From assembly GCA_019828565.1 (NCBI GenBank), contig JAHDYR010000067.1, positions 680,994 to 744,993 on the forward strand: 64,000 nucleotides of DNA. The letters run 5' to 3'. Shown in pieces: positions 16,196-60,763 of this stretch (position 1 is the first letter of the stretch; each line of letters opens with the position of its first letter). The stretch is from Carpediemonas membranifera BICM. Taxonomy: Eukaryota; Protista; Fornicata. The position numbers and the translations under genes are program-made. The notes beneath the pieces are model-generated. The model had not been told where the DNA came from and did not search any database. It saw only the letters and a program-made list of their open reading frames with translations.

Positions 16196-19100
16196 CATTT
16201 GACGCGCACAACCTGCTTAATACTGCATAAACGCATCGCTGATCGCTTTCTCTTCTGTTCTTCAACGCCCAAGGAGCGGCTTCCAGGTCGGCAACGGTTG
16301 CCGACCTGGACCCGTGCAGTTTATGCTTTTTCGGCCAACCGACGAAGTCAAGCTTGGCCAAGACACATACTGTGTACACGGACCCTGGCAGGCTAGTTAC
16401 GCCGCTCAGCCTCTGCATCCAGTTGATAATCACTCGCCATTTACTTCTGGTGCTTTTCCTGCTCTCTCTTCTCCATCACGTCGTCATACTCGGCCCTCGT
16501 CAGCCTCACAGTTGTCATCCCGGCATCACGGATGTGCTCAAAGGCCTCAACGGGCAGCTTCGGCATCCCGTCCTCGCTGTCGCTGCTGCTGCCCAAGTCT
16601 GACTCGCTCTCGTGATAGCGGCGAAGGCGAATGCGTCTGCTGGGCTCCCTGGTCTTCATAGCGTCATAGAGCGGAGCGAGCCCACTTCCATTGGCCCCGC
16701 TACGGACACCCTCATCGGTATCTCTCTCAGACATATCACACTCAACCTGTTGTGACTGAAGAAATGACAGGTTGTCGACGAGGCTATCCTCGGCATCGCT
16801 GTCTGAACTCTCCTCATCCTCCCACTCTCCTTCCAGCATCTCCAACCCGGCCTCATCGTCAAACTCGCCCTCCACTGCGGTCTCCGGCATCTCTGCCTCG
16901 CCAGCTGTCTCGTCAAACAGCGCCTCATCGTCAGACTCACCCTCCCCCGTGTCGCCCCCCTCGGGATTACGCTGGTCGTGGAGCTGGACCATCCTCATCC
17001 TGAGCTTTTTGTAAAGCCACCAGGTCGGCAGAGCTTAAGGTAATCCTGGCGCCCTCATCCTGGCGCCTCATCCCTGGCGCCGTCATCCCTGGCGTCCTCT
17101 CCCTCATAAATCTGAATCATCTTCTTGTCTTGCTCCCGATGTTGTCATTGCTGTTTTCGTGTCCACAAGCATTCCAGTCTCATTATAATGTTTATTCAGT
17201 ACCAAATCATCCTTTAGTGACGGGCATTCTCCTCTACATTGCCGAGAAAAAGAGTTGATGTTGATTAGATGGTGACGAATGCATTACCGGACATTTGACG
17301 CGCACAACCTGCTTAATACTGCATAAAAGCATCGCTGATCGCTTTCTCTTCTGTTCTTCAACGCCCAAGGAGCGGCTTCCAGGTCGGCAACGGTTGCCGA
17401 CCTGGACCCGTGCAGTTTATGCTTTTTCGGCCAACCGACGAAGTCAAGCTTAGCCAAGACACATACTGTGTACACGGACCCTGGCAGGCTAGTTACGCCG
17501 CTCAGCCTCTGCATCCAGTTGATAATCACTCGCCATTTACTTCTGGTGCTTTTCCTGCTCTCTCTTCTCCATCACGTCGTCATACTCGGCCCTCGTCAGC
17601 CTCACAGTTGTCATCCCGGCATCACGGATGTGCTCAAAGGCCTCAACGGGCAGCTTCGGCATCCCGTCCTCGCTGTCGCTGCTGCTGCCCAAGTCTGACT
17701 CGCTCTCGTGATAGCGGCGAAGGCGAATGCGTCTGCTGGGCACCCTGGTCTTCATAGCGTCATAGAGCGGAGCGAGCCCACTTCCATTGGCCCCGCTACG
17801 GACACCCTCATCGGTATCTCTCTCAGACATATCACACTCAACCTGTTGTGACTGAACAAATGACAGGTTGTCGACGAGGCTATCCTCGGCATCGCTGTCT
17901 GAACTCTCCTCATCCTCCCACTCTCCTTCCAGCATCTCCAACCCGGCCTCATCGTCAAACTCGCCCTCCACTGCGGTCTCCGGCATCTCTGCCTCGCCAG
18001 CTGTCTCGTCAAACAGCGCCTCATCGTCAGACTCACCCTCCCCCGTGTCGACCCCATCGGGATTACGCTGGTCGTGGAGCTGGACCATCCTCATCCTGAG
18101 CTTTTTGTAAAGCCACCAGGTCGGCAGAGCTTAAGGTAATCCTGGCGCCCTCATCCTGGCGCCTCATCCCTGGCGCCGTCATCCCTGGCGTCCTCTCCCT
18201 CATAAATCTGAATCATCTTCTTGTCTTGCTCCCGATGTTGTCATTGCTGTTTTCGTGTCCACAAGCATTCCAGTCTCATTATAATGTTTATTCAGTACCA
18301 AATCATCCTTTAGTGACGGGCATTCTCCTCTGCATTGCCGAGAAAAAGAGTTGATGTTGATTAGATGGTGACGAATGCATTACCGGACATTTGACGCGCA
18401 CAACCTGCTTAATACTGCATAAAAGCATCGCTGATCGCTTTCTCTTCTGTTCTTCAACGCCCAAGGAGCGGCTTCCAGGTCGGCAACCGTTGCCGACCTG
18501 GACCCGTGCAGTTTATGCTTTTTCGGCCAACCGACGAAGTCAAGCTTGGCCAAGACACATACTGTGTACAAGGACCCTGGCAGGCTAGTTACGCCGCTCA
18601 GCCTCTGCATCCAGTTGATAATCACTCGCCATTTACTTCTGGTGCTTTTCCTGCTCTCTCTTCTCCATCACGTCGTCATACTCGGCCCTCGTCAGCCTCA
18701 CAGTTGTCATCCCGGCATCACGGATGTGCTCAAAGGCCTCAACGGGCAGCTTCGGCATCCCGTCCTCGCTGTCGCTGCTGCTGCCCAAGTCTGACTCGCT
18801 CTCGTGATAGCGGCGAAGGCGAATGCGTCTGCTGGGCTCCCTGGTCTTCATAGCGTCATAGAGCGGAGCGAGCCCACTTCCATTGGCCCCGCTACGGACA
18901 CCCTCATCGGTATCTCTCTCAGACATATCACACTCAACCTGTTGTGACTGGAAGAAATGACAGGTTGTCGACGAGGCTATCCTCGGCATCGCTGTCTGAA
19001 CTCTCCTCATCCTCCCACTCTCCTTCCAGCATCTCCAACCCGGCCTCATCGTCAAACTCGCCCTCCACTGCGGTCTCCGGCATCTCTGCCTCGCCAGCTG

Positions 19101-19200
19101 TCTCGTCAAACAGCGCCTCATCGTCAGACTCACCCTCCCCCGTGTCGACCCCCTCGGGCTTACGCTGGTCGTGGAGCTGGACCATCCTAATCCTGAGCTT
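16196..19200 (-). repeat. Array of ~1096-bp tandem repeats (2 units plus a third that forms the 3' end of gene B); each unit has a 185-aa acidic ORF and a 29-bp palindrome
   Basis: Near-identical ORFs recur at 16188, 17284 and 18380 (period 1096). Confidence 0.95.
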
Positions 19201-20052
19201 GTTGTAAAGCCAGTCATCGAGCGTCGGCGGCACCAGGTCAGCAGAGCTTCGGATCTCCGGGTTGAGATCGAGGATCGTTGGGCGCCGCGTGGTCGTTAAG
19301 TGACTGGACGCCAACTGGTGCCTGAACTGCTCATCGGTCAGGCTGATGCGCTTGTCCTTAATGACCTTCTGAGGCTTCTCCCGCGGTCTGCCGCGGCGCT
19401 CTAGCGTGCCGATAGACTGCATCCTATCGGTGGACACGTCGATCCGCTGCGCAAAGCGAAGCATGCGAACCGTCAACCCCTGAACCTTGAGCGCCTCCGA
19501 TACAGCACTGGCCTGCGGGAATCCCGATTTGAGCGTGCCAAAGCCCATCCAGCTCGGGCACGAGGTAAGGTCTATCGCATCGGGGAGATTACCTTGGAGA
19601 TACGAATACTCCCAGCCCGTCTGGTTGAGCAGAATGGCAATGGCGCCATACGGGCTGGGGAGACTCTCAACTGATGCAGGCGACACCTCTTCCTCCTCTT
19701 TCCAGGACAACGGCTTCGCGGGGTGTGGCAAGTCGAAGTTCCGGAAAGACTGAACAGCCGAAACGATCTTCTTCTGCGTCCCCAGAGGCTTCTCAGCGAG
19801 GTACCGGCGCAAATGGGTTACCAGCTCGGCACTACGAACAATCGCGATGCCCTTCTGGATATCTGTGGCGGTTTCCTGACAAATTCTGGCCAAAACGTCT
19901 TTCAGAAGCTTGTTGTAGTTCGTACGCGATTTGGTTGGAACATTCTTCAACCAACGCTTCATGATATCTTCGTCTATTGCCGCTACAGCCTCCATGGGAT
20001 GAGTTTTTGCTGCTTCAGTTTGGATTGCTATTCCAGAATTTCGACCATACAA
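18633..20052 (-). CDS. Degenerate tyrosine-recombinase-fold protein B with AT-hook and acidic tail (one frameshift near 18950; intact in copy 2)
   Basis: KSRTNY, TQKKIVSAVQSF, AILLNQTGWEYSYL (box I-like), GLTVRMLRF (HxLR-like), RRGRPR; D/E-rich C-terminus. Confidence 0.5.
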
Positions 20053-21123
20053 AACTCTAAAGTATTGGGAATTGACCCAAACTGAGCTCAGATACGTGAT
20101 CTGGGGCCTGAGTGGGTGAATGGGGACCTTTCATTTTTTAAAAGTGTTGTTACACTCCCAGATTTAATGATAATCTCCGGTGCTGGAAGTAATTCTGAAA
20201 TGGCGATCCAAATGCAATTATTATTCTGAAAACCGAATCCATGGTGCTGCCATTCTCTATTCGCTCTAATAGGTACCCAGGCCAGGTTTTGTACACCCTC
20301 CCGCTTGCCTCGGAATTCGGACATGCCGAAATTCTGAAATTCGAATACCACCGCCCATTTTTGACGTATGAGATCAGTATCCCATGCCAAACCTCAGGAC
20401 GGCATTCGTGTACCTTTTCCTGCCCTGTATCCATTAGATAACCACCCACTTTCCTTTCACAATGTGCACTTTATGCTCGCAACGAGATTGAAATGGCGAA
20501 CTTAAGAATAGAAAGAATACTGGCGGCTTTAACGTAGTAGGCATGTGTACAACACTAAGAAACATCAGTATGCGGGCGCAGAGCATCATTAAAGCAACAA
20601 TAATCCCTAAACAACATCAAGTACCATAAGTCCACCAGGACCATACGATATGAACTATAAATGGAGCATAGATCAGTACAGCTGATTTGAAAGTACCAGG
20701 CATGGCCAGAATACCGCAATTATCGTCCGTTGATCCACGTGACCTCCATCTTGGTCGGTATCCAGAGAACCTCCGTCAGACGCTTGCAACGGAACATTTA
20801 GGGGGAGCATCCTGAATGGGGCCAGATTTGAGGGACCCTTGGTCTGACATGCCATGACCGAGTACTCTAGGGGCCTCCACAGTGCGTCCCGAGGTACGTT
20901 ATAGCACCACAGACTTGGTGTGTCTTAGCCTGCACCGCCCGAAAGCTCGTCGGATCACTCCCCATACGTTATATCGCCATTCAGTCCACATAATGGATGT
21001 TTTCGGAGCGATTATATCCCCCGTTTGTATGGTATAACGTTTCCGACACCCCGTTGCCTACGGTTACTGGCAATTTTCTCATCTCTGTTATATGTCCATT
21101 ATTGGGATATAACGAAGAGAAGA

Positions 21124-23108
21124 ATGACGTTCGAATTCCTTCACGAGTGGATCGAGAGCACCTCAGATGATGTGATTGAGGCCGTTATCACCGAATTCAA
21201 GGAGAAGAAGACAAACAAGGCGAAGAGTGCCGTTCTTCGGGACAAATTGCTCGACGAGAACGATATCTTCGATATAGTCGTCAAGAACGGTACGTAATTG
21301 GTGCAAATGTTTATATAGGGATCAACTTTAACCACCTGTGCTCATATTTCGAGATTCAGGGCGAGAAGAAGGCAGAACTCGAGGCATTGCTGTCTCAGCA
21401 GGTGCAGGATAAGACCTCGAACGAGAACATCGAGGCAACCTTCACGGAGAAGGAGATGAAGGCGTTTGAGTCGGCCGCTGTCACAGCCTTCAAGAACTCC
21501 AAGAGGGCTGAGTATGCCAAGGAGAATGAGGGCGCGCGTATCGAAAAAGAGGCGCTGAGTGTCAAGGTTCGGGCGTGGCGCAACGCGACATCCACCAACG
21601 CGCTTGTGCGCGACCATGTCACAGCAATGGTTGCCAGGGTGCGCAGCAAGGAGGCAGACCTTGCTTACATGAAGCACTCCTGCCGCTCGTACTTCGAAGA
21701 GTACATCATCGCCCTGGAATGGTTGGAGACCCCCGCGGGAGAAGGTACGCCCCTGCTCCCCCCAGGTACTGGCGCTATCATCGATTACTATCACAAAATT
21801 GTTCGAGGATACAAGAAGAGAGTCAAGCAGTTGAGGAAGAGCTTGACGGCAAAGAGTGAGGAAGTCATCACGCTGCATCGACGCCTTCTGCAGCAGCAGG
21901 CTGAGCGAGAGGCAGCCTATGACGCTGACAAGTCCATGGATGCATCACTCCCATGCAGCCCCATCCCGCCACAGTCTGGCACAGTCTCCAGGACTTCCTG
22001 TCCCCGACGCGATACGGACGAGGCGCAGGCAGCCATGTCTGTGAAGCGCAAGGCCCTCATCATCACGCCCGAGAAGGCCAGGCCAGAGGACTCGGAGGAG
22101 GAGTCAGAGGAGGAAGAGGAGCCAGTGGAGGAGGTCGAGTCAGAGGAGGAAGAGGAGCCAGTGGAGGAGGTCGAGTCAGAGGAGGAAGAGGAGCCAGTGG
22201 CGGATGAGTTGATGGAGGAGCTGCACTTTGGCGACCTCGAGGGCGGCAACTCCGGCGACGACGAGGATGTTTGCTCAGCGTCTGCACAAGCAACCGCTCC
22301 GAATGACCTGGCAGACCCCATAGACCTCAACTTTACGCCTGAGATGAAGGATATCATCGCACAGCACTCTCCGGCCAAGAGTAAGTCAGAGGAGGAGCAG
22401 GAGGAAGAGAAGGCCGAGTCAGACGAGGAGGGTGGGGCAGAGGAGGAGGGTGAAACCGAGGAGAGCGGAAGAGTGGTCAACGCCAGGTCTGACCCAACCC
22501 GCTACAACCGAACTGTGGCATTCGACATGATCATCACGACAAGGCTTCCGAGTTCAGGTTGGCCTACGTATCCGACCCTGGGTTATGGGAACTGCATCAT
22601 TCACTGCCTGATGATGATGTCGGGTCTGAGAACATTTACTGCGTTCAGACGCAAATTGCCCTTGTCGCAGAAGCTCAAGGCTGAGGATGAGGCGACAGCT
22701 TACCGCCAGACGCTCCTCGCCCACGCAAGGACCATGGCCGTATTCTCAAAGATGACAGAGATAGAGCTTCTGGATGAGCTGTTTCCTGAGCACGTCAATA
22801 GTGACGGGACAGTGACGAGATGGGCATGCGTTGAAGCAATCAGAGTGTGGACTTCGATGACAGGGAAGCCGACCATGCTTGTCAACATTGATGAGAAGAT
22901 GATCACGCACATTTACCGTAACGAGAAGGGCAATGCATTGACAGTGCGGCGTCCCTTCGATGGCGATCAGAGTAGAGCGCTGGAGAGTTTTAGGGCGGAG
23001 TGCGCCAGGCTCGACATCAACTACGTGATACAGTTGATGGGTCGACATGCAACTTTGCGGAAGGTCTCAAAGCCGACCCAGGTGAAGATTAGGAGACGTA
23101 AGAACTAA
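21124..23108 (+). CDS. Protein with coiled coil, acidic repeats and C-terminal OTU-like cysteine protease; intron 21290-21318
   Basis: A 29-bp GTACGT...TATAG intron joins MTFEFLHEW...VVKNG to INFNHLC in frame. OTU-like motifs TLGYGNCIIHCL, WACVEAI and IQLMGRH. 36-bp ESEEEEEPVEEV repeats at ~22101-22200. Confidence 0.65.
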
Positions 23109-23291
23109 ATATGACATGAAGTATTCGGTAATTTGATCGGTACTATTAACTAGGAGTCTGTTCATAGTCACAAGTGCAACATCACTCACGTCACGTGAAT
23201 TAGCGAGGATATATTAGTTCACACCAGTGTTTACCCGTCTATGTTGCATTGTTAACACGTATCATTGAAACTGTGACCAACTTTGGTTGCG

Positions 23292-25805
23292 AGCATAAAC
23301 TGCACGGGTCCAGGTCGGCAACCGTTGCCGACCTGGAAGCCGCTCCTTGGGCGTTGAAGAACAGAAGAGAAAGCGATCAGCGATGCTTTTATGCAGTATT
23401 AAGCAGGTTGTGCGCGTCAAATGTCCGGTAATGCATTCGTCACCATCTAATCAACATCAACTCTTTTTCTCGGCAATGCAGATGAGAATGCCCGTCACTA
23501 AAGGATGATTTGGTACTGAATAAACATTATAATGAGACTGGAATGCTTGTGGACACGAAAACAGCAATGACAACATCGGGAGCAAGACAAGAAGATGATT
23601 CAGATTTATGAGGGAGAGGACGCCAGGGATGACGGCGCCAGGGATGAGGCGCCAGGATGAGGGCGCCAGGATTACCTTAAGCTCTGCCGACCTGGTGGCT
23701 TTACAAAAAGCTCAGGATGAGGATGGTCCAGCTCCACGACCAGCGTAATCCCGATGGGGGTCGACACGGGGGAGGGTGAGTCTGACGATGAGGCGCTGTT
23801 TGACGAGACAGCTGGCGAGGCAGAGATGCCGGAGACCGCAGTGGAGGGCGAGTTTGACGATGAGGCCGGGTTGGAGATGCTGGAAGGAGAGTGGGAGGAT
23901 GAGGAGAGTTCAGACAGCGATGCCGAGGATAGCCTCGTCGACAACCTGTCATTTCTTCAGTCACAACAGGTTGAGTGTGATATGTCTGAGAGAGATACCG
24001 ATGAGGGTGTCCGTAGCGGGGCCAATGGAAGTGGGCTCGCTCCGCTCTATGACTCATGAAGACCAGGGAGCCCAGCAGACGCATTCGCCTTCGCCGCTAT
24101 CACGAGAGCGAGTCAGACTTGGGCAGCAGCAGCGACAGCGAGGACGGGATGCCGAAGCTGCCCGTTGAGGCCTTTGAGCACATCCGTGATGCCGGGATGA
24201 CAACTGTGAGGCTGACGAGGGCCGAGTATGACGACGTGATGGAGAAGAGAGAGCAGGAAAAGCACCAGAAGTAAATGGCGAGTGATTATCAACTGGATGC
24301 AGAGGCTGAGCGGCGTAACTAGCCTGCCAGGGTCCTTGTACACAGTATGTGTCTTGGCCAAGCTTGACTTCGTCGGTTGGCCGAAAAAGCATAAACTGCA
24401 CGGGTCCAGGTCGGCAACCGTTGCCGACCTGGAAGCCGCTCCTTGGGCGTTGAAGAACAGAAGAGAAAGCGATCAGCGATGCTTTTATGCAGTATTAAGC
24501 AGGTTGTGCGCGTCAAATGTCCGGTAATGCATTCGTCACCATCTAATCAACATCAACTCTTTTTCTCGGCAATGCAGATGAGAATGCCCGTCACTAAAGG
24601 ATGATTTGGTACTGAATAAACATTATAATGAGACTGGAATGCTTGTGGACACGAAAACAGCAATGACAACATCGGGAGCAAGACAAGAAGATGATTCAGA
24701 TTTATGAGGGAGAGGACGCCAGGGATGACGGCGCCAGGGATGAGGCGCCAGGATGAGGGCGCCAGGATTACCTTAAGCTCTGCCGACCTGGTGGCTTTAC
24801 AAAAAGCTCAGGATGAGGATGGTCCAGCTCCACGACCAGCGTAATCCCGATGGGGGTCGACACGGGGAGGGTGAGTCTGACGATGAGGCGCTGTTTGACG
24901 AGACAGCTGGCGAGGCAGAGATGCCGGAGACCGCAGTGGAGGGCGAGTTTGACGATGAGGCCGGGTTGGAGATGCTGGAAGGAGAGTGGGAGGATGAGGA
25001 GAGTTCAGACAGCGATGCCGAGGATAGCCTCGTCGACAACCTGTCATTTCTTCAGTCACAACAGGTTGAGTGTGATATGTCTGAGAGAGATACCGATGAG
25101 GGTGTCCGTAGCGGGGCCAATGGAAGTGGGCTCGCTCCGCTCTATGACTCAATGAAGACCAGGGAGCCCAGCAGACGCATTCGCCTTCGCCGCTATCACG
25201 AGAGCGAGTCAGACTTGGGCAGCAGCAGCGACAGCGAGGACGGGATGCCGAAGCTGCCCGTTGAGGCCTTTGAGCACATCCGTGATGCCGGGATGACAAC
25301 TGTGAGGCTGACGAGGGCCGAGTATGACGACGTGATGGAGAAGAGAGAGCAGGAAAAGCACCAGAAGTAAATGGCGAGTGATTATCAACTGGATGCAGAG
25401 GCTGAGCGGCGTAACTAGCCTGCCAGGGTCCTTGTACACAGTATGTGTCTTGGCCAAGCTTGACTTCGTCGGTTGGCCGAAAAAGCATAAACTGCACGGG
25501 TCCAGGTCGGCAACCGTTGCCGACCTGGAAGCCGCTCCTTGGGCGTTGAAGAACAGAAGAGAAAGCGATCAGCGATGCTTTTATGCAGTATTAAGCAGGT
25601 TGTGCGCGTCAAATGTCCGGTAATGCATTCGTCACCATCTAATCAACATCAACTCTTTTTCTCGGCAATGCAGAGGAGAATGCCCGTCACTAAAGGATGA
25701 TTTGGTACTGAATAAACATTATAATGAGACTGGAATGCTTGTGGACACGAAAACAGCAATGACAACATCGGGAGCAAGACAAGAAGATGATTCAGATTTA
25801 TGAGG
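23292..25805 (+). repeat. Array of the ~1.1-kb repeat (2 acidic ORFs, 3 palindromes), inverted relative to 16196-19200
   Basis: Same ORFs on the + strand at 24282 and 25378. Confidence 0.95.
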
Positions 25806-25931
25806 ACGCTGAAGAGGCCATGGTGAATCGACCGGGGACCCTGGCCCGCCATCTTCCTTCGTAAACAGTACGTCTGGTGCTCCCATGGTTGTTCCCAAGG
25901 TTCTTGTTCTTCGCGCATTGCTGGAATCGAC

Positions 25932-27206: not shown

Positions 27207-27230
27207 ACTATATCCATTGATTTATCAGTG

Positions 27231-28142: not shown

Positions 28143-28145
28143 AGT

Positions 28146-31120: not shown

Positions 31121-31204
31121 TCCAGAGTAGATTTTCTACTAAAAATTGGCATTGTTACAACCAATCATTAACATTAATAGAGACTCACCAGCCCGCGGCC
31201 AATC

Positions 31205-34967: not shown

Positions 34968-34969
34968 TC

Positions 34970-46850: not shown

Positions 46851-46934
46851 GATTGGCCGCGGGCTGGTGAGTCTCTATTAATGTTAATGATTGGTTGTAA
46901 CAATGCCAATTTTTAGTAGAAAATCTACTCTGGA

Positions 46935-48505: not shown

Positions 48506-51500
48506 CCAAATCATCCTTTAGTGACGGGCATTCTCCTCTGCATTGCCGAGAAAAAGAGTTGATGTTGATTAGATGGTGACGAATGCATTACCGGACATTT
48601 GACGCGCACAACCTGCTTAATACTGCATAAAAGCATCGCTGATCGCTTTCTCTTCTGTTCTTCAACGCCCAAGGAGCGGCTTCCAGGTCGGCAACCGTTG
48701 CCGACCTGGACCCGTGCAGTTTATGCTTTTTCGGCCAACCGACGAAGTCAAGCTTGGCCAAGACACATACTGTGTACAAGGACCCTGGCAGGCTAGTTAC
48801 GCCGCTCAGCCTCTGCATCCAGTTGATAATCACTCGCCATTTACTTCTGGTGCTTTTCCTGCTCTCTCTTCTCCATCACGTCGTCATACTCGGCCCTCGT
48901 CAGCCTCACAGTTGTCATCCCGGCATCACGGATGTGCTCAAAGGCCTCAACGGGCAGCTTCGGCATCCCGTCCTCGCTGTCGCTGCTGCTGCCCAAGTCT
49001 GACTCGCTCTCGTGATAGCGGCGAAGGCGAATGCGTCTGCTGGGCTCCCTGGTCTTCATAGCGTCATAGAGCGGAGCGAGCCCACTTCCATTGGCCCCGC
49101 TACGGACACCCTCATCGGTATCTCTCTCAGACATATCACACTCAACCTGTTGTGACTGAAGAAATGACAGGTTGTCGACGAGGCTATCCTCGGCATCGCT
49201 GTCTGAACTCTCCTCATCCTCCCACTCTCCTTCCAGCATCTCCAACCCGGCCTCATCGTCAAACTCGCCCTCCACTGCGGTCTCCGGCATCTCTGCCTCG
49301 CCAGCTGTCTCGTCAAACAGCGCCTCATCGTCAGACTCACCCTCCCCCGTGTCGACCCCCATCGGGATTACGCTGGTCGTGGAGCTGGACCATCCTCATC
49401 CTGAGCTTTTTGTAAAGCCACCAGGTCGGCAGAGCTTAAGGTAATCCTGGCGCCCTCATCCTGGCGCCTCATCCCTGGCGCCGTCATCCCTGGCGTCCTC
49501 TCCCTCATAAATCTGAATCATCTTCTTGTCTTGCTCCCGATGTTGTCATTGCTGTTTTCGTGTCCACAAGCATTCCAGTCTCATTATAATGTTTATTCAG
49601 TACCAAATCATCCTTTAGTGACGGGCATTCTCCTCTGCATTGCCGAGAAAAAGAGTTGATGTTGATTAGATGGTGACGAATGCATTACCGGACATTTGAC
49701 GCGCACAACCTGCTTAATACTGCATAAAAGCATCGCTGATCGCTTTCTCTTCTGTTCTTCAACGCCCAAGGAGCGGCTTCCAGGTCGGCAACCGTTGCCG
49801 ACCTGGACCCGTGCAGTTTATGCTTTTTCGGCCAACCGACGAAGTCAAGCTTGGCCAAGACACATACTGTGTACAAGGACCCTGGCAGGCTAGTTACGCC
49901 GCTCAGCCTCTGCATCCAGTTGATAATCACTCGCCATTTACTTCTGGTGCTTTTCCTGCTCTCTCTTCTCCATCACGTCGTCATACTCGGCCCTCGTCAG
50001 CCTCACAGTTGTCATCCCGGCATCACGGATGTGCTCAAAGGCCTCAACGGGCAGCTTCGGCATCCCGTCCTCGCTGTCGCTGCTGCTGCCCAAGTCTGAC
50101 TCGCTCTCGTGATAGCGGCGAAGGCGAATGCGTCTGCTGGGCTCCCTGGTCTTCATAGCGTCATAGAGCGGAGCGAGCCCACTTCCATTGGCCCCGCTAC
50201 GGACACCCTCATCGGTATCTCTCTCAGACATATCACACTCAACCTGTTGTGACTGAAGAAATGACAGGTTGTCGACGAGGCTATCCTCGGCATCGCTGTC
50301 TGAACTCTCCTCATCCTCCCACTCTCCTTCCAGCATCTCCAACCCGGCCTCATCGTCAAACTCGCCCTCCACTGCGGTCTCCGGCATCTCTGCCTCGCCA
50401 GCTGTCTCGTCAAACAGCGCCTCATCGTCAGACTCACCCTCCCCCGTGTCGACCCCCATCGGGATTACGCTGGTCGTGGAGCTGGACCATCCTCATCCTG
50501 AGCTTTTTGTAAAGCCACCAGGTCGGCAGAGCTTAAGGTAATCCTGGCGCCCTCATCCTGGCGCCTCATCCCTGGCGCCGTCATCCCTGGCGTCCTCTCC
50601 CTCATAAATCTGAATCATCTTCTTGTCTTGCTCCCGATGTTGTCATTGCTGTTTTCGTGTCCACAAGCATTCCAGTCTCATTATAATGTTTATTCAGTAC
50701 CAAATCATCCTTTAGTGACGGGCATTCTCCTCTGCATTGCCGAGAAAAAGAGTTGATGTTGATTAGATGGTGACGAATGCATTACCGGACATTTGACGCG
50801 CACAACCTGCTTAATACTGCATAAAAGCATCGCTGATCGCTTTCTCTTCTGTTCTTCAACGCCCAAGGAGCGGCTTCCAGGTCGGCAACCGTTGCCGACC
50901 TGGACCCGTGCAGTTTATGCTTTTTCGGCCAACCGACGAAGTCAAGCTTGGCCAAGACACATACTGTGTACAAGGACCCTGGCAGGCTAGTTACGCCGCT
51001 CAGCCTCTGCATCCAGTTGATAATCACTCGCCATTTACTTCTGGTGCTTTTCCTGCTCTCTCTTCTCCATCACGTCGTCATACTCGGCCCTCGTCAGCCT
51101 CACAGTTGTCATCCCGGCATCACGGATGTGCTCAAAGGCCTCAACGGGCAGCTTCGGCATCCCGTCCTCGCTGTCGCTGCTGCTGCCCAAGTCTGACTCG
51201 CTCTCGTGATAGCGGCGAAGGCGAATGCGTCTGCTGGGCACCCTGGTCTTCATAGCGTCATAGAGCGGAGCGAGCCCACTTCCATTGGCCCCGCTACGGA
51301 CACCCTCATCGGTATCTCTCTCAGACATATCACACTCAACCTGTTGTGACTGAAGAAATGACAGGTTGTCGACGAGGCTATCCTCGGCATCGCTGTCTGA
51401 ACTCTCCTCATCCTCCCACTCTCCTTCCAGCATCTCCAACCCGGCCTCATCGTCAAACTCGCCCTCCACTGCGGTCTCCGGCATCTCTGCCTCGCCAGCT

Positions 51501-51600
51501 GTCTCGTCAAACAGCGCCTCATCGTCAGACTCACCCTCCCCCGTGTCGCCCCCCTCGGGCTTACGCTGGTCGTGGAGCTGGACCATCCTAATCCTGAGCT
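48506..51600 (-). repeat. Array of the 1.1-kb repeat (period 1097), third unit forming the 3' end of gene B
   Basis: ORFs recur at 48588, 49685 and 50782. Confidence 0.95.
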
Positions 51601-52453
51601 TGTTGTAAAGCCAGTCATCGAGCGTCGGCGGCACCAGGTCAGCAGAGCTTCGGATCTCCGGGTTGAGATCGAGGATCGTTGGGCGCCGCGTGGTCGTTAA
51701 GTGACTGGACGCCAACTGGTGCCTGAACTGCTCATCGGTCAGGCTGATGCGCTTGTCCTTAATGACCTTCTGAGGCTTCTCCCGCGGTCTGCCGCGGCGC
51801 TCTAGCGTGCCGATAGACTGCATCCTATCGGTGGACACGTCGATCCGCTGCGCAAAGCGAAGCATGCGAACCGTCAACCCCTGAACCTTGAGCGCCTCCG
51901 ATACAGCACTGGCCTGCGGGAATCCCGATTTGAGCGTGCCAAAGCCCATCCAGCTCGGGCACGAGGTAAGGTCTATCGCATCGGGGAGATTACCTTGGAG
52001 ATACGAATACTCCCAGCCCGTCTGGTTGAGCAGAATGGCAATGGCGCCATACGGGCTGGGGAGACTCTCAACTGATGCAGGCGACACCTCTTCCTCCTCT
52101 TTCCAGGACAACGGCTTCGCGGGGTGTGGCAAGTCGAAGTTCCGGAAAGACTGAACAGCCGAAACGATCTTCTTCTGCGTCCCCAGAGGCTTCTCAGCGA
52201 GGTACCGGCGCAAATGGGTTACCAGATCGTCACTACGAACAATCGCGATGCCCTTCTGGATATCTGTGGCGGTTTCCTGACAAATTCTGGCCAAAACGTC
52301 TTTCAGAAGCTTGTTGTAGTTCGTACGCGATTTGGTTGGAACATTCTTCAACCAACGCTTCATGATATCTTCGTCTATTGCCGCTACAGCCTCCATGGGA
52401 TGAGTTTTTGCTGCTTCAGTTTGGATTGCTATTCCAGAATTTCGACCATACAA
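51035..52453 (-). CDS. Degenerate tyrosine-recombinase-fold protein B, 472 aa, intact
   Basis: Same motifs as 18633-20052 in a single open frame. Confidence 0.55.
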   Translation of the reverse strand: MYGRNSGIAIQTEAAKTHPMEAVAAIDEDIMKRWLKNVPTKSRTNYNKLLKDVLARICQETATDIQKGIAIVRSDDLVTHLRRYLAEKPLGTQKKIVSAVQSFRNFDLPHPAKPLSWKEEEEVSPASVESLPSPYGAIAILLNQTGWEYSYLQGNLPDAIDLTSCPSWMGFGTLKSGFPQASAVSEALKVQGLTVRMLRFAQRIDVSTDRMQSIGTLERRGRPREKPQKVIKDKRISLTDEQFRHQLASSHLTTTRRPTILDLNPEIRSSADLVPPTLDDWLYNKLRIRMVQLHDQRKPEGGDTGEGESDDEALFDETAGEAEMPETAVEGEFDDEAGLEMLEGEWEDEESSDSDAEDSLVDNLSFLQSQQVECDMSERDTDEGVRSGANGSGLAPLYDAMKTRVPSRRIRLRRYHESESDLGSSSDSEDGMPKLPVEAFEHIRDAGMTTVRLTRAEYDDVMEKREQEKHQK

Positions 52454-53525
52454 AACTCTAAAGTATTGGGAATTGACCCAAACTGAGCTCAGATACGTGA
52501 TCTGGGGCCTGAGTGGGTGAATGGGGACCTTTCATTTTTTAAAAGTGTTGTTACACTCCCAGATTTAATGATAATCTCCGGTGCTGGAAGTAATTCTGAA
52601 ATGGCGATCGAAATGCAATTATTATTCTGAAAACCGAATCCATGGTGCTGCCATTCTCTATTCGCTCTAATAGGTACCCAGGCCAGGTTTTGTACACCCT
52701 ACCCGCTTGCCTCGGAATTCGGACATGCCGAAATTCTGAAATTCGAATACCACCGCCCATTTTAGACGTATGAGATCAGTATCCCATGCCAAACCTCAGG
52801 ACGGCATTCGTGTACCTTTTCCTGCCCTGTATCCATTAGATAACCACCCACTTTCCTTTCACAATGTGCACTTTATGCTCGCAACGAGATTGAAATGGCG
52901 AACTTAAGAATAGAAAGAATACTGGCGGCTTTAACGTAGTAGGCATGTGTACAACACTAAGAAACATCAGTATGCGGGCGCAGAGCATCATTAAAGCAAC
53001 AATTATCCCTAAACAACATCAACAACTATAAGTCCACCAGGACCATACGATATGAACTATAAATGGAGCATAGATCAGTACAGCTGATTTGAAAGTACCA
53101 GGCATGGCCAGAATACCGCAATTATCGTCCGTTGATCCACGTGACCTCCATCTTGGTCGGTATCCAGAGAACCTCCGTCAGACGCTTGCAACGGAACATT
53201 TAGGGGGAGCATCCTGAATGGGGCCAGATTTGAGGGACCCTTGGTCTGACATGCCATGACCGAGTACTCTAGGGGCCTCCACAGTGCGTCCCGAGGTACG
53301 TTATAGCACCACAGACTTGGTGTGTCTTAGCCTGCACCGCCCGAAAGCTCGTCGGATCACTCCCCATACGTTATATCGCCATTCAGTCCACATAATGGAT
53401 GTTTTCGGAGCGATTATATCCCCCGTTTGTATGGTATAACGTTTCCGACACCCCGTTGCCTACGGTTACTGGCAATTTTCTCATCTCTGTTATATGTCCA
53501 TTATTGGGATATAACGAAGAGAAGA

Positions 53526-55510
53526 ATGACGTTCGAATTCCTTCACGAGTGGATCGAGAGCACCTCAGATGATGTGATTGAGGCCGTTATCACCGAATTC
53601 AAGGAGAAGAAGACAAACAAGGCGAAGAGTGCCGTTCTTCGGGACAAATTGCTCGACGAGAACGATATCTTCGATATAGTCGTCAAGAACGGTACGTAAT
53701 TGGTGCAAATGTTTATATAGGGATCAACTTTAACCACCTGTGCTCATATTTCGAGATTCAGGGCGAGAAGAAGGCAGAACTCGAGGCATTGCTGTCTCAG
53801 CAGGTGCAGGATAAGACCTCGAACGAGAACATCGAGGCAACCTTCACGGAGAAGGAGATGAAGGCGTTTGAGTCGGCCGCTGTCACAGCCTTCAAGAACT
53901 CCAAGAGGGCTGAGTATGCCAAGGAGAATGAGGGCGCGCGTATCGAAAAAGAGGCGCTGAGTGTCAAGGTTCGGGCGTGGCGCAACGCGACATCCACCAA
54001 CGCGCTTGTGCGCGACCATGTCACAGCAATGGTTGCCAGGGTGCGCAGCAAGGAGGCAGACCTTGCTTACATGAAGCACTCCTGCCGCTCGTACTTCGAA
54101 GAGTACATCATCGCCCTGGAATGGTTGGAGACCCCCGCGGGAGAAGGTACGCCCCTGCTCCCCCCAGGTACTGGCGCTATCATCGATTACTATCACAAAA
54201 TTGTTCGAGGATACAAGAAGAGAGTCAAGCAGTTGAGGAAGAGCTTGACGGCAAAGAGTGAGGAAGTCATCACGCTGCATCGACGCCTTCTGCAGCAGCA
54301 GGCTGAGCGAGAGGCAGCCTATGACGCTGACAAGTCCATGGATGCATCACTCCCATGCAGCCCCATCCCGCCACAGTCTGGCACAGTCTCCAGGACTTCC
54401 TGTCCCCGACGCGATACGGACGAGGCGCAGGCAGCCATGTCTGTGAAGCGCAAGGCCCTCATCATCACGCCCGAGAAGGCCAGGCCAGAGGACTCGGAGG
54501 AGGAGTCAGAGGAGGAAGAGGAGCCAGTGGAGGAGGTCGAGTCAGAGGAGGAAGAGGAGCCAGTGGAGGAGGTCGAGTCAGAGGAGGAAGAGGAGCCAGT
54601 GGCGGATGAGTTGATGGAGGAGCTGCACTTTGGCGACCTCGAGGGCGGCAACTCCGGCGACGACGAGGATGTTTGCTCAGCGTCTGCACAAGCAACCGCT
54701 CCGAATGACCTGGCAGACCCCATAGACCTCAACTTTACGCCTGAGATGAAGGATATCATCGCACAGCACTCTCCGGCCAAGAGTAAGTCAGAGGAGGAGC
54801 AGGAGGAAGAGAAGGCCGAGTCAGACGAGGAGGGTGGGGCAGAGGAGGAGGGTGAAACCGAGGAGAGCGGAAGAGTGGTCAACGCCAGGTCTGACCCAAC
54901 CCGCTACAACCGAACTGTGGCATTCGACATGATCATCACGACAAGGCTTCCGAGTTCAGGTTGGCCTACGTATCCGACCCTGGGTTATGGGAACTGCATC
55001 ATTCACTGCCTGATGATGATGTCGGGTCTGAGAACATTTACTGCGTTCAGACGCAAATTGCCCTTGTCGCAGAAGCTCAAGGCTGAGGATGAGGCGACAG
55101 CTTACCGCCAGACGCTCCTCGCCCACGCAAGGACCATGGCCGTATTCTCAAAGATGACAGAGATAGAGCTTCTGGATGAGCTGTTTCCTGGGCACGTCAA
55201 TAGTGACGGGACAGTGACGAGATGGGCATGCGTTGAAGCAATCAGAGTGTGGACTTCGATGACAGGGAAGCCGACCATGCTTGTCAACATTGATGAGAAG
55301 ATGATCACGCACATTTACCGTAACGAGAAGGGCAATGCATTGACAGTGCGGCGTCCCTTCGATGGCGATCAGAGTAGAGCGCTGGAGAGTTTTAGGGCGG
55401 AGTGCGCCAGGCTCGACATCAACTACGTGATACAGTTGATGGGTCGACATGCAACTTTGCGGAAGGTCTCAAAGCCGACCCAGGTGAAGATTAGGAGACG
55501 TAAGAACTAA
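53526..55510 (+). CDS. OTU-like protease protein, copy 2; intron 53692-53720
   Basis: Matches 21124-23108 except FPEH/FPGH. Confidence 0.65.
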
Positions 55511-55693
55511 ATATGACATGAAGTATTCGGTAATTTGATCGGTACTATTAACTAGGAGTCTGTTCATAGTCACAAGTGCAACATCACTCACGTCACGTGA
55601 ATTAGCGAGGATATATTAGTTCACACCAGTGTTTACCCGTCTATGTTGCATTGTTAACACGTATCATTGAAACTGTGACCAACTTTGGTTGCG

Positions 55694-57111
55694 AGCATAA
55701 ACTGCACGGGTCCAGGTCGGCAACCGTTGCCGACCTGGAAGCCGCTCCTTGGGCGTTGAAGAACAGAAGAGAAAGCGATCAGCGATGCTTTTATGCAGTA
55801 TTAAGCAGGTTGTGCGCGTCAAATGTCCGGTAATGCATTCGTCACCATCTAATCAACATCAACTCTTTTTCTCGGCAATGCAGAGGAGAATGCCCGTCAC
55901 TAAAGGATGATTTGGTACTGAATAAACATTATAATGAGACTGGAATGCTTGTGGACACGAAAACAGCAATGACAACATCGGGAGCAAGACAAGAAGATGA
56001 TTCAGATTTATGAGGGAGAGGACGCCAGGGATGACGGCGCCAGGGATGAGGCGCCAGGATGAGGGCGCCAGGATTACCTTAAGCTCTGCCGACCTGGTGG
56101 CTTTACAAAAAGCTCAGGATGAGGATGGTCCAGCTCCACGACCAGCGTAATCCCGATGGGGTCGACACGGGGGAGGGTGAGTCTGACGATGAGGCGCTGT
56201 TTGACGAGACAGCTGGCGAGGCAGAGATGCCGGAGACCGCAGTGGAGGGCGAGTTTGACGATGAGGCCGGGTTGGAGATGCTGGAAGGAGAGTGGGAGGA
56301 TGAGGAGAGTTCAGACAGCGATGCCGAGGATAGCCTCGTCGACAACCTGTCATTTCTTCAGTCACAACAGGTTGAGTGTGATATGTCTGAGAGAGATACC
56401 GATGAGGGTGTCCGTAGCGGGGCCAATGGAAGTGGGCTCGCTCCGCTCTATGACTCAATGAAGACCAGGGTGCCCAGCAGACGCATTCGCCTTCGCCGCT
56501 ATCACGAGAGCGAGTCAGACTTGGGCAGCAGCAGCGACAGCGAGGACGGGATGCCGAAGCTGCCCGTTGAGGCCTTTGAGCACATCCGTGATGCCGGGAT
56601 GACAACTGTGAGGCTGACGAGGGCCGAGTATGACGACGTGATGGAGAAGAGAGAGCAGGAAAAGCACCAGAAGTAAATGGCGAGTGATTATCAACTGGAT
56701 GCAGAGGCTGAGCGGCGTAACTAGCCTGCCAGGGTCCTTGCACACAGTATGTGTCTTGGCCAAGCTTGACTTCGTCGGTTGGCCGAAAAAGCATAAACTG
56801 CACGGGTCCAGGTCGGCAACCGTTGCCGACCTGGAAGCCGCTCCTTGGGCGTTGAAGAACAGAAGAGAAAGCGATCAGCGATGCTTTTATGCAGTATTAA
56901 GCAGGTTGTGCGCGTCAAATGTCCGGTAATGCATTCGTCACCATCTAATCAACATCAACTCTTTTTCTCGGCAATGCAGAGGAGAATGCCCGTCACTAAA
57001 GGATGATTTGGTACTGAATAAACATTATAATGAGACTGGAATGCTTGTGGACACGAAAACAGCAATGACAACATCGGGAGCAAGACAAGAAGATGATTCA
57101 GATTTATGAGG
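55694..57111 (+). repeat. 1.1-kb repeat array (one unit fewer than in copy 1)
   Basis: A single acidic ORF at 56119-56676 between the OTU and 424-aa genes. Confidence 0.93.
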
Positions 57112-57237
57112 ACGCTGAAGAGGCCATGGTGAATCGACCGGGGACCCTGGCCTGCCATCTTCCTTCGTAAACAGTACGTCTGGTGCTCCCATGGTTGTTC
57201 CCAAGGTTCTTGTTCTTCGCGCATTGCTGGAATCGAC

Positions 57238-58512
57238 ATGGAAAGCAATTACATGCTTCAGGAGCTTCACTGCCTCACTGGTACGTCCTATCGTATGCGA
57301 CGGGACAAGTTATCTGAGAAATCGGTCCTCGTTGTCAACCGTTTCAACGATTCCGCCCGTGGACGTGCCGAGGAGCTCTTTCTCGCCGCTCTTGAGCTTG
57401 CTCCAGCCTCTAACGTGTTCGAGGAACGCGATGAGCCCATTGTGCGCAAGGCAGCTCCGCAACCTGCTGAGAAGCGCGTTCGCTCCGCCGATTGCGCAGA
57501 GCAAGTCGATTATCCTGCCAAGCCTTCAGACCGAGCCCTGCGCGCAGCCAGGCGCGCAGCTGGCGACGCCGCTACATCCCTCGCCGGCCCATCTCCCACC
57601 GGTTCTGCTGCCAGACAGCTTTCAGCGGATGACCCGTGCTCTGGCACCCGCTCGGCTGTCCCTTCCATGTCCCTCGCCGAGTCAGCTTCTTCTGGCTCTG
57701 TTGGTAGCTCGTCTGTGGCCATCGCCGACACTGGTGCATCCGCATCCGCCATAACTCCCACTGCCCGCGCCAAGGCGCCGAAGCGCAAGCTTCCTTTCCT
57801 TACCAGTGAGATTGATGTGGAGCAGTTCCTAAGCTCGTGGGCTAGTTCCACCAAGCTTGAGGCAGCCGGCGCCAGGGAGCTGAAGTTTATATCCAAGTCG
57901 GACCTGAAGTCGGTCATTCGGAATGAGAGGGTCCAGAGTGTCGAGCGCATCTGCAACATCGCATGGGTGGCATATCAGATGGAGCTCTACAATGAGCTGG
58001 AGAATGACGGTGTGGCCATCGACGACTGCATCGTCCCGACCGAGCAGCTGGAGGTACTGCAGGCTAGGGTTAGCGAGGCCTTGATGCGACCCACCAGAGA
58101 ACTTATCGATGGAACTCGGAAGGTGTGGAATTACAGGGCGACGTACGCCGGCATGGTCAAGTCGATTTGTGACTCCATGGCAACGATGTTGTTCATCGAC
58201 CCTGGGACCGTCACGCGACACTATATTCTCGTGGTGAGATACATGATTCTCTTCCCCAATCTCTTCTGGGACCTGCTCTCGAGCCACTGTCTGCCTGACA
58301 CCATCGCTTACACCAACGTTGTCATGGATGTTGGTCTGAAGAATCTTTTGCTTGACACCCCTGCCGAGGATGACTCGTCCCTCACCACGCTCATCCAGAA
58401 GAAGTTTGAGGGCGATGACAGAAGAGTTGTCATTTATAAGGCGATTGGAACAGCTGATGAGGAAGTTGTCTCAACTGGGGCAGTTCCTCAGGTCGAAGAG
58501 CCTGACGAGTAA
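57238..58512 (+). CDS. Hypothetical protein, 424 aa, copy 2
   Basis: Identical protein to 25932-27206. Confidence 0.7.
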   Translation: MESNYMLQELHCLTGTSYRMRRDKLSEKSVLVVNRFNDSARGRAEELFLAALELAPASNVFEERDEPIVRKAAPQPAEKRVRSADCAEQVDYPAKPSDRALRAARRAAGDAATSLAGPSPTGSAARQLSADDPCSGTRSAVPSMSLAESASSGSVGSSSVAIADTGASASAITPTARAKAPKRKLPFLTSEIDVEQFLSSWASSTKLEAAGARELKFISKSDLKSVIRNERVQSVERICNIAWVAYQMELYNELENDGVAIDDCIVPTEQLEVLQARVSEALMRPTRELIDGTRKVWNYRATYAGMVKSICDSMATMLFIDPGTVTRHYILVVRYMILFPNLFWDLLSSHCLPDTIAYTNVVMDVGLKNLLLDTPAEDDSSLTTLIQKKFEGDDRRVVIYKAIGTADEEVVSTGAVPQVEEPDE

Positions 58513-58536
58513 ACTATATCCATTGATTTATCAGTG

Positions 58537-59450
58537 TTACTTACCAAACCGAGTAAAGGAGCTACGGGTAAACTGCTCCAACAGCTTTCGAGCCTGAGGC
58601 GAAGGCTGCGGACAATACCAGCTGCGAGTAGTTTTGTTTTCGACCAGATTGTTTTTGTTTGGCGTCTGCAGTCGCCTCGCACGGTTTCTGCCAAGTTCTG
58701 GTCACCCACGGCTCCTCCCACTTGGTGAGGTGATAGCCGGACTCAAACTTGGAGATAGAGTCTATGGCATAGTGCATCACAGTGTCAGTGAGCTGAACAG
58801 CAGTCACCTCTCCAGTGACGAGATCGGCTGTGCTCGTAAAGTTGGCCCAGTCAATAAAGTCCTTGAAGACTTCAGGAGAAATCTTGCGAAGGGCATAGTG
58901 CTCCCACCAGACCGTGAAAGCAGTAGGATGGCTGACGATTGCGTAAGCCCTCTTGGCCACACTCGTCGGTGCGATGGTAATGCACGCCTTCCTGACCTTG
59001 TCGCTCGGTAGTCTCATGCGCCTCACCTTAGCAGCAATGTCACACCAAACAACCAAGTCCTGCACGTCTTTGAGCAGTGCGAGGGTGGTGTCGATCGACA
59101 TTGACGACGGATCACCAGCACCGAAACCTGCGAAGACTGTCGTCTGAATGTCGACTGCCACAGAGCCCGAGAACGACACAAGAAGGCTGTTCGTTCTCTC
59201 CATCATCCACTTACTGCCACACTGAGTGCATAGCCAAGCGGAAAAGAACGAGCTGCGGACATCGGCCCTGATTTTGGCTGTGTTACCGTTATTCTCGCCC
59301 TCGTTAAGCCTACTGATTGTGAATAGCGAGTACTTGTCCATAAAGAGCTCAAAAGCTTCCTTAAAAAGCCGTTGTCTCTTGCTGTTGGGTGCTTGACGTG
59401 ATAGTGTTCATTTCCATCCGTGCAGAGCCCAGCCGAACGTCTCTAGACAT
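58537..59450 (-). CDS. Hypothetical ~303-aa protein, copy 2 (homopolymer frameshifts)
   Basis: Matches 27231-28142. Confidence 0.55.
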
Positions 59451-59453
59451 AGT

Positions 59454-60763
59454 CTGAGCAGCGTAACTAGCCTGCCAGGGTCCGTGTACACAGTATGTGT
59501 CTTGGCCAAGCTTGACTTCGTCGGTTGGCCGAAAAAGCATAAACTGCACGGGTCCAGGTCGGCAACCGTTGCCGACCTGGAAGCCGCTCCTTGGGCGTTG
59601 AAGAACAGAAGAGAAAGCGATCAGCGATGCTTTTATGCAGTATTAAGCAGGTTGTGCGCGTCAAATGTCCGGTAATGCATTCGTCACCATCTAATCAACA
59701 TCAACTCTTTTTCTCGGCAATGCAGAGGAGAATGCCCGTCACTAAAGGATGATTTGGTACTGAATAAACATTATAATGAGACTGGAATGCTTGTGGACAC
59801 GAAAACAGCAATGACAACATCGGGAGCAAGACAAGAAGATGATTCAGATTTATGAGGGAGAGGACGCCAGGGATGACGGCGCCAGGGATGAGGCGCCAGG
59901 ATGAGGGCGCCAGGATTACCTTAAGCTCTGCCGACCTGGTGGCTTTACAAAAAGCTCAGGATGAGGATGGTCCAGCTCCACGACCAGCGTAATCCCGATG
60001 GGGTCGACACGGGGAGGGTGAGTCTGACGATGAGGCGCTGTTTGACGAGACAGCTGGCGAGGCAGAGATGCCGGAGACCGCAGTGGAGGGCGAGTTTGAC
60101 GATGAGGCCGGGTTGGAGATGCTGGAAGGAGAGTGGGAGGATGAGGAGAGTTCAGACAGCGATGCCGAGGATAGCCTCGTCGACAACCTGTCATTTCTTC
60201 AGTCACAACAGGTTGAGTGTGATATGTCTGAGAGAGATACCGATGAGGGTGTCCGTAGCGGGGCCAATGGAAGTGGGCTCGCTCCGCTCTATGACGCTAT
60301 GAAGACCAGGGAGCCCAGCAGACGCATTCGCCTTCGCCGCTATCACGAGAGCGAGTCAGACTTGGGCAGCAGCAGCGACAGCGAGGACGGGATGCCGAAG
60401 CTGCCCGTTGAGGCCTTTGAGCACATCCGTGATGCCGGGATGACAACTGTGAGGCTGACGAGGGCCGAGTATGACGACGTGATGGAGAAGAGAGAGCAGG
60501 AAAAGCACCAGAAGTAAATGGCGAGTGATTATCAACTGGATGCAGAGGCTGAGCGGCGTAACTAGCCTGCCAGGGTCCTTGTACACAGTATGTGTCTTGG
60601 CCAAGCTTGACTTCGTCGGTTGGCCGAAAAAGCATAAACTGTACGGGTCCAGGTCGGCAACCGTTGCCGACCTGGAAGCCGCTCCTTGGGCGTTGAAGAA
60701 CAGAAGAGAAAGCGATCAGCGATGCTTTTTATGCAGTATTAAGCAGGTTGTGCGCGTCAAATG
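59454..60763 (+). repeat. ~1.2 units of the 1.1-kb repeat
   Basis: Acidic ORF ends at 60517; two palindromes. Confidence 0.93.

Follow-up and report, generated by a model that had tools for sequence, protein, structure and literature searches.

Can a cut-and-paste transposon exist in two internal arrangements within one genome, and by which route would it pass from one to the other? The question is raised by a 64,000-nt stretch of DNA from Carpediemonas membranifera BICM (assembly GCA_019828565.1, contig JAHDYR010000067.1, positions 680,994 to 744,993 of the forward strand), referred to here as the window and numbered from its first nucleotide, which holds two copies of a giant element. An original prediction, made from the letters alone, had described the copies as isomers in which a central cassette flips between inverted 1.1-kb repeats.

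Architecture and relatedness of the copies

The layout was derived from a self-comparison of the window and a segment map. The outer parts of the two copies align in reverse (12942-17511 with 64000-59448 at 98.4% and 28146-34975 with 49906-43082 at 99.7%), while the central parts align in the same direction (16147-24709 with 48548-57111 at 99.5% and 24388-29492 with 55694-60800 at 99.4%). With A and B denoting the arms, U1 and U2 the unique segments, R the 1096-bp repeat, the sign the orientation and x the number of units, copy 1 reads A(+) R(+)x2.8 U1(+) R(-)x2.3 U2(+) R(-)x1.24 B(+) and copy 2 reads B(-) R(+)x2.8 U1(+) R(-)x1.3 U2(+) R(-)x1.24 A(-). Compared with copy 1, the arms of copy 2 are exchanged and reversed, while the middle of ~13 kb keeps strand and order at 99.4-99.5% identity. 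A rearrangement of this kind is far beyond chance, and within this assembly the two copies represent one element in two inversion isomers, as had been predicted.

Copy 1 switches alignment direction at 16146/16147 and 29550/29551; in copy 2 the breakpoints are 48501/48502 and 60800/60813. Each coincides with the outer edge of an array of the 1096-bp repeat, the two outer arrays of a copy being opposed in orientation. R1 and R3, the arrays next to the arms of copy 1, match as inverted repeats without a break over 1283-1354 bp at 98-99% identity. The predicted position of both breakpoints inside oppositely oriented repeat arrays is thereby borne out, and the map of open reading frames (ORFs) agrees that the 3' end of a gene in U1, gene B, is directed at a SET-like ORF in copy 1 and at a PHD-like ORF in copy 2. 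Gene B and the SET-like ORF of copy 1 are in tandem, whereas gene B and the PHD-like ORF of copy 2 are convergent. The predicted order of arms and centre stood as well, whereas the number of arrays did not, since each copy has three and not two; the left end of copy 1 is at 12234. The flip leaves every coding sequence unaltered, so that only gene neighbourhoods differ.

The 22.7-kb element is a genuine cut-and-paste DDE transposon, as had been supposed, because copy 1 is bounded by terminal inverted repeats (TIRs), 2-bp target-site duplications are found at two copies, and the element encodes a transposase for which a DDE (RNase H-like) fold is predicted. The TIRs of copy 1 are 74 nt long and 99% complementary, and the termini start CATACTGTG, i.e. 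CAT. In-silico removal of copy 1 together with one TC of its duplication restores an uninterrupted Ty3/gypsy chromodomain reading frame. For a third copy, copy 3, the duplication is AA/AA, and the terminus of this family (family 1) recurs at each complete end retrieved from other copies, with different flanking DNA each time.

Scoring the isomer state of other genomic copies had been suggested as a check on the prediction, and this was carried out for four copies, with the gene B paralogues P0010, P0012 and P0038-P0043 outside the count. Copy 3, on the same contig at ~130.6-153.4 kb (loci L010 and L003), is 22,738 bp long with termini as in copy 1 and reads B(-) R(+)x1.8 U1(+) R(-)x3.3 U2(+) R(-)x1.24 A(-), the arrangement of copy 2. 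Copy 4, on JAHDYR010000069.1, reads B(-) R(+)x0.8 U1(+) and at least 7.6 units of R(-) before it continues beyond the retrieved locus; here gene B stands beside arm B, separated from it by its own partial unit alone. Gene B is consequently found beside the PHD-transposase arm in three of the four scored copies (2, 3 and 4), and copy 1 alone is flipped.

Copies 1 and 2 differ by 3 substitutions in arm B (5.4 kb), 5 in U1 (2.8 kb) and 2 in U2 (2.3 kb), while their distances to copy 3 amount to 17-18, 29-30 and 18-20, respectively; in arm B, 45-59 substitutions separate copy 4 from copies 1-3. Since 2-5 substitutions per segment stand against 17-30, copies 1 and 2 are, on these counts, each other's closest relatives, i.e. 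sisters. With copies 3 and 4 in the state of copy 2, the inversion in copy 1 would be derived and recent and, by parsimony, would have happened once, on the copy 1 branch. Coordinates of the features are collected in Table 1.

Table 1. Features of copies 1 and 2 and of the DNA between them, in window positions, and segments of sister family 2, in positions of the named locus.
Feature	Position	Strand	Remarks
Copy 1, whole element	12234-34967		22,734 bp
Copy 1, left TIR	12234-12307	+	74 bp, starts CATACTGTGAAAG; TC duplication at 12232-12233
Copy 1, arm A	12234-16146	+	
Copy 1, 'YRa' ORF	13308-13769	+	recombinase signal absent
Copy 1, HEPN ORF	14175-14927	-	weak HEPN_Swt1 match, E=0.006
Copy 1, SET-like ORF	15265-15843	-	motif only
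Copy 1, array R1	16147-19212	+	2.8 units; joins arm A at repeat position 2 and U1 at 872
Copy 1, gene B	18934-20052	-	372-aa ORF; tail in R1
Copy 1, U1	19213-23291	+	gene B and OTU-like ORF
Copy 1, OTU-like ORF	21387-23108	+	573 aa
Copy 1, middle array R2	23292-25805	-	2.3 units; inverted relative to R1, direct relative to R3
Copy 1, U2	25806-28139	+	
Copy 1, 424-aa ORF	25932-27206	+	
Copy 1, 303/336-aa ORF	27231-28241	-	5' end extends into R3
Copy 1, array R3	28140-29550	-	1.24 units and 46-bp partial; joins U2 at 262-268 and arm B at 1051; inverted partner of R1
Copy 1, arm B	29551-34967	+	PHD/FYVE-like ORF, orf169, transposase, right TIR
Copy 1, PHD/FYVE-like Cys-rich ORF	29838-30470	-	
Copy 1, orf169	30611-31120	-	
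Copy 1, transposase	31298-33820	+	840 aa (P0004)
Copy 1, right TIR	34894-34967		second TC at 34968-34969
Spacer between copies 1 and 2	34968-43088		8.1 kb; remainder of interrupted chromodomain; ORF with reverse-transcriptase domain at 41122-42372
Copy 2, whole element	43089 to past 64000		inverted relative to copy 1; last ~0.7 kb of arm A, TIR included, lost to the window end
Copy 2, TIR	43089-43162		
Copy 2, arm B, reversed	43089-48501	-	
Copy 2, transposase	44238-46757	-	
Copy 2, fused orf169 and PHD-like ORF	46935-48215	+	426 aa
Copy 2, array beside arm B	48502-51613	+	46 bp and 2.8 units; joins U1 at repeat position 872
Copy 2, gene B	51035-52453	-	472-aa ORF, intact
Copy 2, U1	51614-55693	+	strand as in copy 1
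Copy 2, OTU-like ORF	53789-55510	+	
Copy 2, middle array	55694-57111	-	1.3 units
Copy 2, U2	57112-59447	+	strand as in copy 1
Copy 2, 424-aa ORF	57238-58512	+	
Copy 2, array beside arm A	59448-60812	-	1.24 units
Copy 2, arm A, reversed	60813-64000	-	cut by window end; indel-rich patches at ~62880-63100 and 63700-64000
Family 2, L002	7474-12817 and 12629-19492		
Family 2, L011	7471-13893		

Origin of the inverted cassette

All four types of junction between the arrays and their surroundings are identical in copies 1-3 (repeat position 2 at arm A, 1051 at arm B, 872 at U1 and 262-268 at U2), and the unit counts follow the unique segments, with 2.8 at U1 and 1.24 at U2 in both window copies, and not the arms. 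A crossover in register between the arm-proximal units would leave exactly this pattern. General homologous recombination between the arrays is the most likely mechanism, because the junctions are preserved, the unit counts stay with U1 and U2, and no recombinase was detected among the ORFs of the element.

We propose a model in which a 13.4-kb cassette, composed of U1, the middle array and U2, is bracketed by two opposed arrays of the 1096-bp repeat, the usual arrangement being the one that places the 3' end of gene B beside the PHD-transposase arm. A single recent, reciprocal and in-register homologous recombination between the arm-A-side and the arm-B-side array would then have inverted the cassette on the branch leading to copy 1, leaving junctions and genes unchanged. 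The agent would be the general recombination machinery of the host and not an invertase encoded by the element, as in the inverted-repeat isomers of plastomes. C. membranifera has been judged haploid, and a heavy reliance on Dmc1-dependent homologous recombination has been proposed for it (PMC8516963); Carpediemonas lacks ORC/Cdc6, and one proposal is that Dmc1-driven recombination sustains its replication. The architecture, the states of the four scored copies and how closely these are related, the matching junctions and the failure to recognise a recombinase are observations, whereas we infer that the exchange was homologous recombination, happened once and was neutral. We lean, with modest confidence, towards this account of copy 1 as one recent, neutral inversion between its arrays by host machinery. 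An exchange between copies 1 and 2 was also worked through on paper and rejected: between matching arrays it would leave the palindromic arrangement unchanged, and between non-matching arrays U2 would be lost.

Several points weigh against this account. All evidence comes from a single Nanopore-based assembly, which is not flawless here, as low-quality patches in arm A of copy 2 show. The repeat units vary at 45 columns in a patchwork common to arrays and copies, as would be expected of frequent gene conversion among units, and these variants give no parental or recombinant pattern, so that the crossover is unplaceable. One event is furthermore the minimum required and not a demonstrated count. 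The repeat units of copies 1 and 3 add up to 6.34 in each case, but the two arrays on either side of U1 hold 2.8 and 2.3 in copy 1 and 1.8 and 3.3 in copy 3, a displacement of one unit; this redistribution could reflect further out-of-register inversions, and two unequal exchanges explain it equally well.

The first of these points leads to the alternative that survives best, namely that copy 1 in truth has the usual arrangement and that the assembler misoriented its cassette across the near-identical inverted arrays. MinION R9.4 1D reads, at 83x long-read coverage, were assembled with ABruijn v1.0, and the result was polished with Nanopolish and Pilon (PMC8516963). The choice of assembler and the noise of the raw reads speak for this alternative; in addition, copies 1, 2 and 3, at 99.4-99.8% identity, are inseparable at raw-read accuracy, arm A of copy 2 carries 75 private, clustered and indel-rich differences resembling unpolished consensus, and frameshifts interrupt otherwise intact ORFs such as gene B of copy 1. 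However, the 83x of long reads derive from high-molecular-weight DNA and had to bridge arrays of just 1.4 and 3.1 kb, and, were all copies in the usual arrangement, no read would lead from arm A across 2.8 units to U1 as the assembly does. Variants of its own and a middle array of different length (2.3 against 1.3 units) distinguish the centre of copy 1 from that of copy 2 and mark copy 1 as a separately resolved locus; the sequence of copy 1 is clean, with one private difference compared to the 75 in copy 2. We hold such a misassembly to be rather unlikely. Real divergence or gene conversion was considered as the source of the 2% divergence of arm A in copy 2 and rejected. At the 75 private sites a 96%-identical paralogue has the same letters as copies 1 and 3, and we read the differences as consensus noise because they are private, clustered and indel-rich and the paralogue sides with copies 1 and 3.

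Slightly less probable, and likewise unlikely, is the active and reversible flip-flop, in which inversion is frequent, every locus is a mixture in culture and the assembly displays the majority form. Both of its structural features are present, i.e. long near-identical inverted repeats around a unique segment and both orientations with unchanged junctions, the latter at different loci of one assembly. At least 1.3 kb of inverted homology at 98-99% is ample substrate in a host proposed to be highly recombination-dependent, the patchwork of the repeat units points to gene conversion among them, and paired out-of-register inversions would yield the unit shift between copies 1 and 3. This last argument is weak, since two independent unequal crossovers serve as well; moreover, three of the four copies share one state, and the orientation of U1 relative to U2 is constant in copies 1-3 even though U1 is flanked by inverted arrays; free flipping would be expected to produce forms in which only U1 is turned round as well, and no such isomer was seen. 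The flip-flop reading exceeds the evidence, as one recent event suffices. In its boldest form, with a cassette that flips appreciably often inside an active giant transposon of RAG1/Transib fold and every copy a mixture of isomers, we find it doubtful and a little less probable still. If true, the element would be a transposon-borne, chromosomal counterpart of the plastome or 2-micron flip-flop, in a host whose replication is proposed to run through homologous recombination, and the arrays derived from gene B could be kept for flipping, for instance to alter the co-transcription neighbours of gene B and of the 303-aa gene.

An origin in transposition and repair appears more remote. Here gap repair from a sister or neighbouring copy would have switched template between the inverted arrays after excision or a local hop. 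The sister copies 1 and 2 are merely 8.1 kb apart in opposite orientation, which fits a local hop followed by repair, and both contain a predicted intact 840-aa transposase ORF. A specific signature was, however, not found, the outcome would be the same as that of a simple crossover, and more steps are needed.

Site-specific inversion by a recombinase of the element itself, either gene B or the ORF that had been labelled 'YRa', in the manner of FLP/FRT or Gin/Hin, is very improbable, even though the repeat itself belongs to gene B. For gene B, the structure prediction gives a helical bundle with confidence over the N-terminal ~100 residues, and its fold matches, none of them significant, include XerD, XerA and a domain situated N-terminally of an integrase (E = 1.5-4.4). 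A pairwise comparison, likewise without significance, shows a short motif common to gene B and 'YRa' that resembles the first conserved motif of tyrosine recombinases. In our reading of the sequences, though, the arginine of this motif is replaced by T in gene B type 2, by E in gene B type 1 and by Y in 'YRa', and the H-x-x-R...Y catalytic region is unrecognisable; the remainder of gene B is predicted at low confidence and ends in an acidic, low-complexity tail. Neither Pfam, with no integrase or resolvase match even at E<=5, nor PDB sequence searches revealed a tyrosine or serine recombinase in any ORF of the element, and the structure and fold search returned nothing significant, so that both candidates were rejected and the label 'YRa' is unsupported.

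Among known systems, the isomers of plastomes and some mitochondrial genomes provide the closest parallel, and this likeness, drawn in the original prediction, fits best: a unique segment lies between large near-identical inverted repeats, junctions are kept, and inversion proceeds by general homologous recombination with no need of a dedicated recombinase. In contrast to plastomes, the setting here is a chromosomal transposon copy with tandem arrays of 1.1-kb units, and one state accounts for three of the four copies. The yeast 2-micron plasmid, which had been named alongside, is also selfish, carries inverted repeats in its interior and occurs as two isomers, but the comparison implies a dedicated recombinase, and none was detected in the element ORFs; the plasmid has its own tyrosine recombinase (FLP/FRT), a defined site and copy-number amplification, a logic inapplicable to an integrated transposon. 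In herpesviruses, L and S are unique segments inverted between inverted repeats to give genome isomers, in a process tied to replication and packaging that yields four equimolar isomers, whereas here the isomers are known from assembled copies only. The G segment of phage Mu, the C segment of P1 (Gin/Cin) and shufflons share an invertible segment within a transposable or mobile element, yet they use serine or tyrosine invertases at short sites and switch the expressed variant; in the present element no invertase was detected, the repeats exceed 1 kb and the flip leaves coding sequence unaltered.

Among eukaryotic DNA transposons, Foldback and Galileo contain inverted, tandemly repetitive sequences that give rise to heterogeneity among copies via recombination. 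Their arrays form the termini, while those described here are internal, 4-5 kb from the 74-bp TIRs, and derived from a protein-coding gene. Inversion between inverted repeats is already familiar as a process, and in the literature we found no described isomeric forms of any eukaryotic cut-and-paste transposon; the C. membranifera genome paper does not mention this transposon family. If the isomers are real, the element is a natural multi-copy reporter of homologous-recombination activity in Carpediemonas, and isomer counts per locus would directly measure recombination between repeats of 1-3 kb.

Gene B and the repeat unit

Positions 294-872 of the repeat unit code for the last ~190 residues of gene B, and positions 1-293 correspond to sequence downstream of its stop codon. 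Since the unit encodes the end of gene B and continues past the stop, the arrays are, judged by sequence, tandem duplications of the 3' portion of gene B. Every unit contains its own 185-aa ORF (minus strand in R1), the C-terminal part of gene B, and the first ~50 bp of the unit beside arm A are diverged junction sequence. Gene B of copy 1 is frameshifted within the repeat. The 303/336-aa ORF is shorter in copy 2 (58562-59341); this shortening and the frameshift of gene B could be genuine mutations, or indels left over in the assembly.

Homologues of gene B were found in C. membranifera only. The gene is a mosaic of two N-terminal types (an estimated ~27% identical) and two types of acidic tail, and all four combinations exist. 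The family is represented at 19213-20052 in the window and at loci L003-L007 (proteins P0038-P0043). Type 1 is present in copies 1 and 2 and type 2 in copies 3 and 4, at the same position of elements that are otherwise 98-99% identical.

A GC-rich motif of ~14 bp also occurs about four times in each repeat unit (unit positions ~898-957, e.g. window 18141-18200). The same motif builds minisatellite arrays of 0.5-2 kb, ~1-1.8 kb downstream of solitary gene B paralogues elsewhere (L004 12422-12970, L005 13126-14841 and L006 12972-15065).

Transposase, sister families and genomic setting

The transposase ORF spans 31205-33820 at its longest (871 aa) and is ~99% identical to a C. membranifera hypothetical protein; the product P0004 comprises 840 aa. 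No Pfam match was obtained, including the CACTA models Transposase_21 and Transposase_24, and sequence profile searches of the PDB returned neither RAG1 nor Transib. When 1.84 billion representative proteins were searched with a profile, only 19 relatives emerged; among the ten that were traced, two clusters are Carpediemonas proteins. The family is nearly confined to this genus. An AlphaFold2 model computed from an alignment of these relatives reached a mean predicted local distance difference test (pLDDT) score of 80.9 and a predicted template modelling (pTM) score of 0.73, and Foldseek matched it to RAG1 (E=2.7e-8, probability 1.0), as well as to the amphioxus RAG1-like protein BbRAGL and to HzTransib. 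The model displays an RNase H-like beta-beta-beta-alpha-beta core around D346 and D425, and the conserved D346, D425 and E701/702, positioned as expected, would form a candidate DDE triad.

The likeness to RAG1, ProtoRAG and Transib therefore lies in the predicted fold and in this candidate triad on its RNase H-like core. With a 2-bp instead of a 5-bp target-site duplication, CAT instead of CAC termini and no similarity at the sequence level, the element is outside canonical Transib. Duplications of 2 bp are typical of Mirage and some CACTA elements. The CACTA-Mirage-Chapaev group is thus compatible in duplication length, while a Pfam match of the transposase is absent. As far as the model goes, the transposase may represent an undescribed lineage, in a metamonad, related to Transib or to the CACTA-Mirage-Chapaev group.

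A sister family (family 2; loci L002 and L011) has a transposase 60% identical to that of family 1. Its copies share only a 5.3-kb arm made up of TIR, subterminal region, PHD-like gene, orf169 and transposase, with the block of these three genes inverted relative to the near terminus when compared to family 1. Beyond 270 bp after the transposase stop codon, the two copies continue into related internal DNA in opposite orientation, beside a ~190-bp inverted repeat. This internal DNA is only 86% identical between the copies, which shows modular reshuffling over time and not a second fresh isomer pair. The trio of PHD-like gene, orf169 and transposase is kept in three families (transposase identity 60% and 38%). 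The 426-aa ORF of copy 2 is transcribed divergently from the transposase, and the corresponding ORF of copy 1 is split, the copies differing by indels there. A role of the PHD-like/orf169 protein as a RAG2-like partner is pure speculation.

The labels given to the cargo genes fared unevenly: HEPN is partly supported by the weak match listed in Table 1, beyond which Pfam returned nothing for the cargo ORFs of the element, and SET, OTU and PHD were assigned from motifs by eye only; a neighbour gene in family 2 has a precomputed Pfam match to SET. The element is notable in itself for combining chromatin-type cargo with a transposase that is recognisable solely by its RAG1/Transib-like predicted fold.

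The surroundings of copies 1 and 2 are nested and transposon-rich, because copy 1 lies inside a Ty3/gypsy element and a further reverse-transcriptase ORF is found in the spacer. Copy 1 interrupts the part of this retrotransposon that codes for the chromodomain (window 12180-12233 and 34968-35040), and the protease, reverse transcriptase, RNase H and integrase domains of the host element are located at 5687-9309. Ordinary eukaryotic genes (a kinase and an SH3-RhoGAP protein) occupy the left flank of the window together with the retrotransposon. Within the element, the OTU-like ORF contains 3.1 copies of a 36-bp tandem repeat that encodes an acidic stretch (22094-22204 and 54496-54606), and overlapping alignments suggest one extra unit of it in copy 3.

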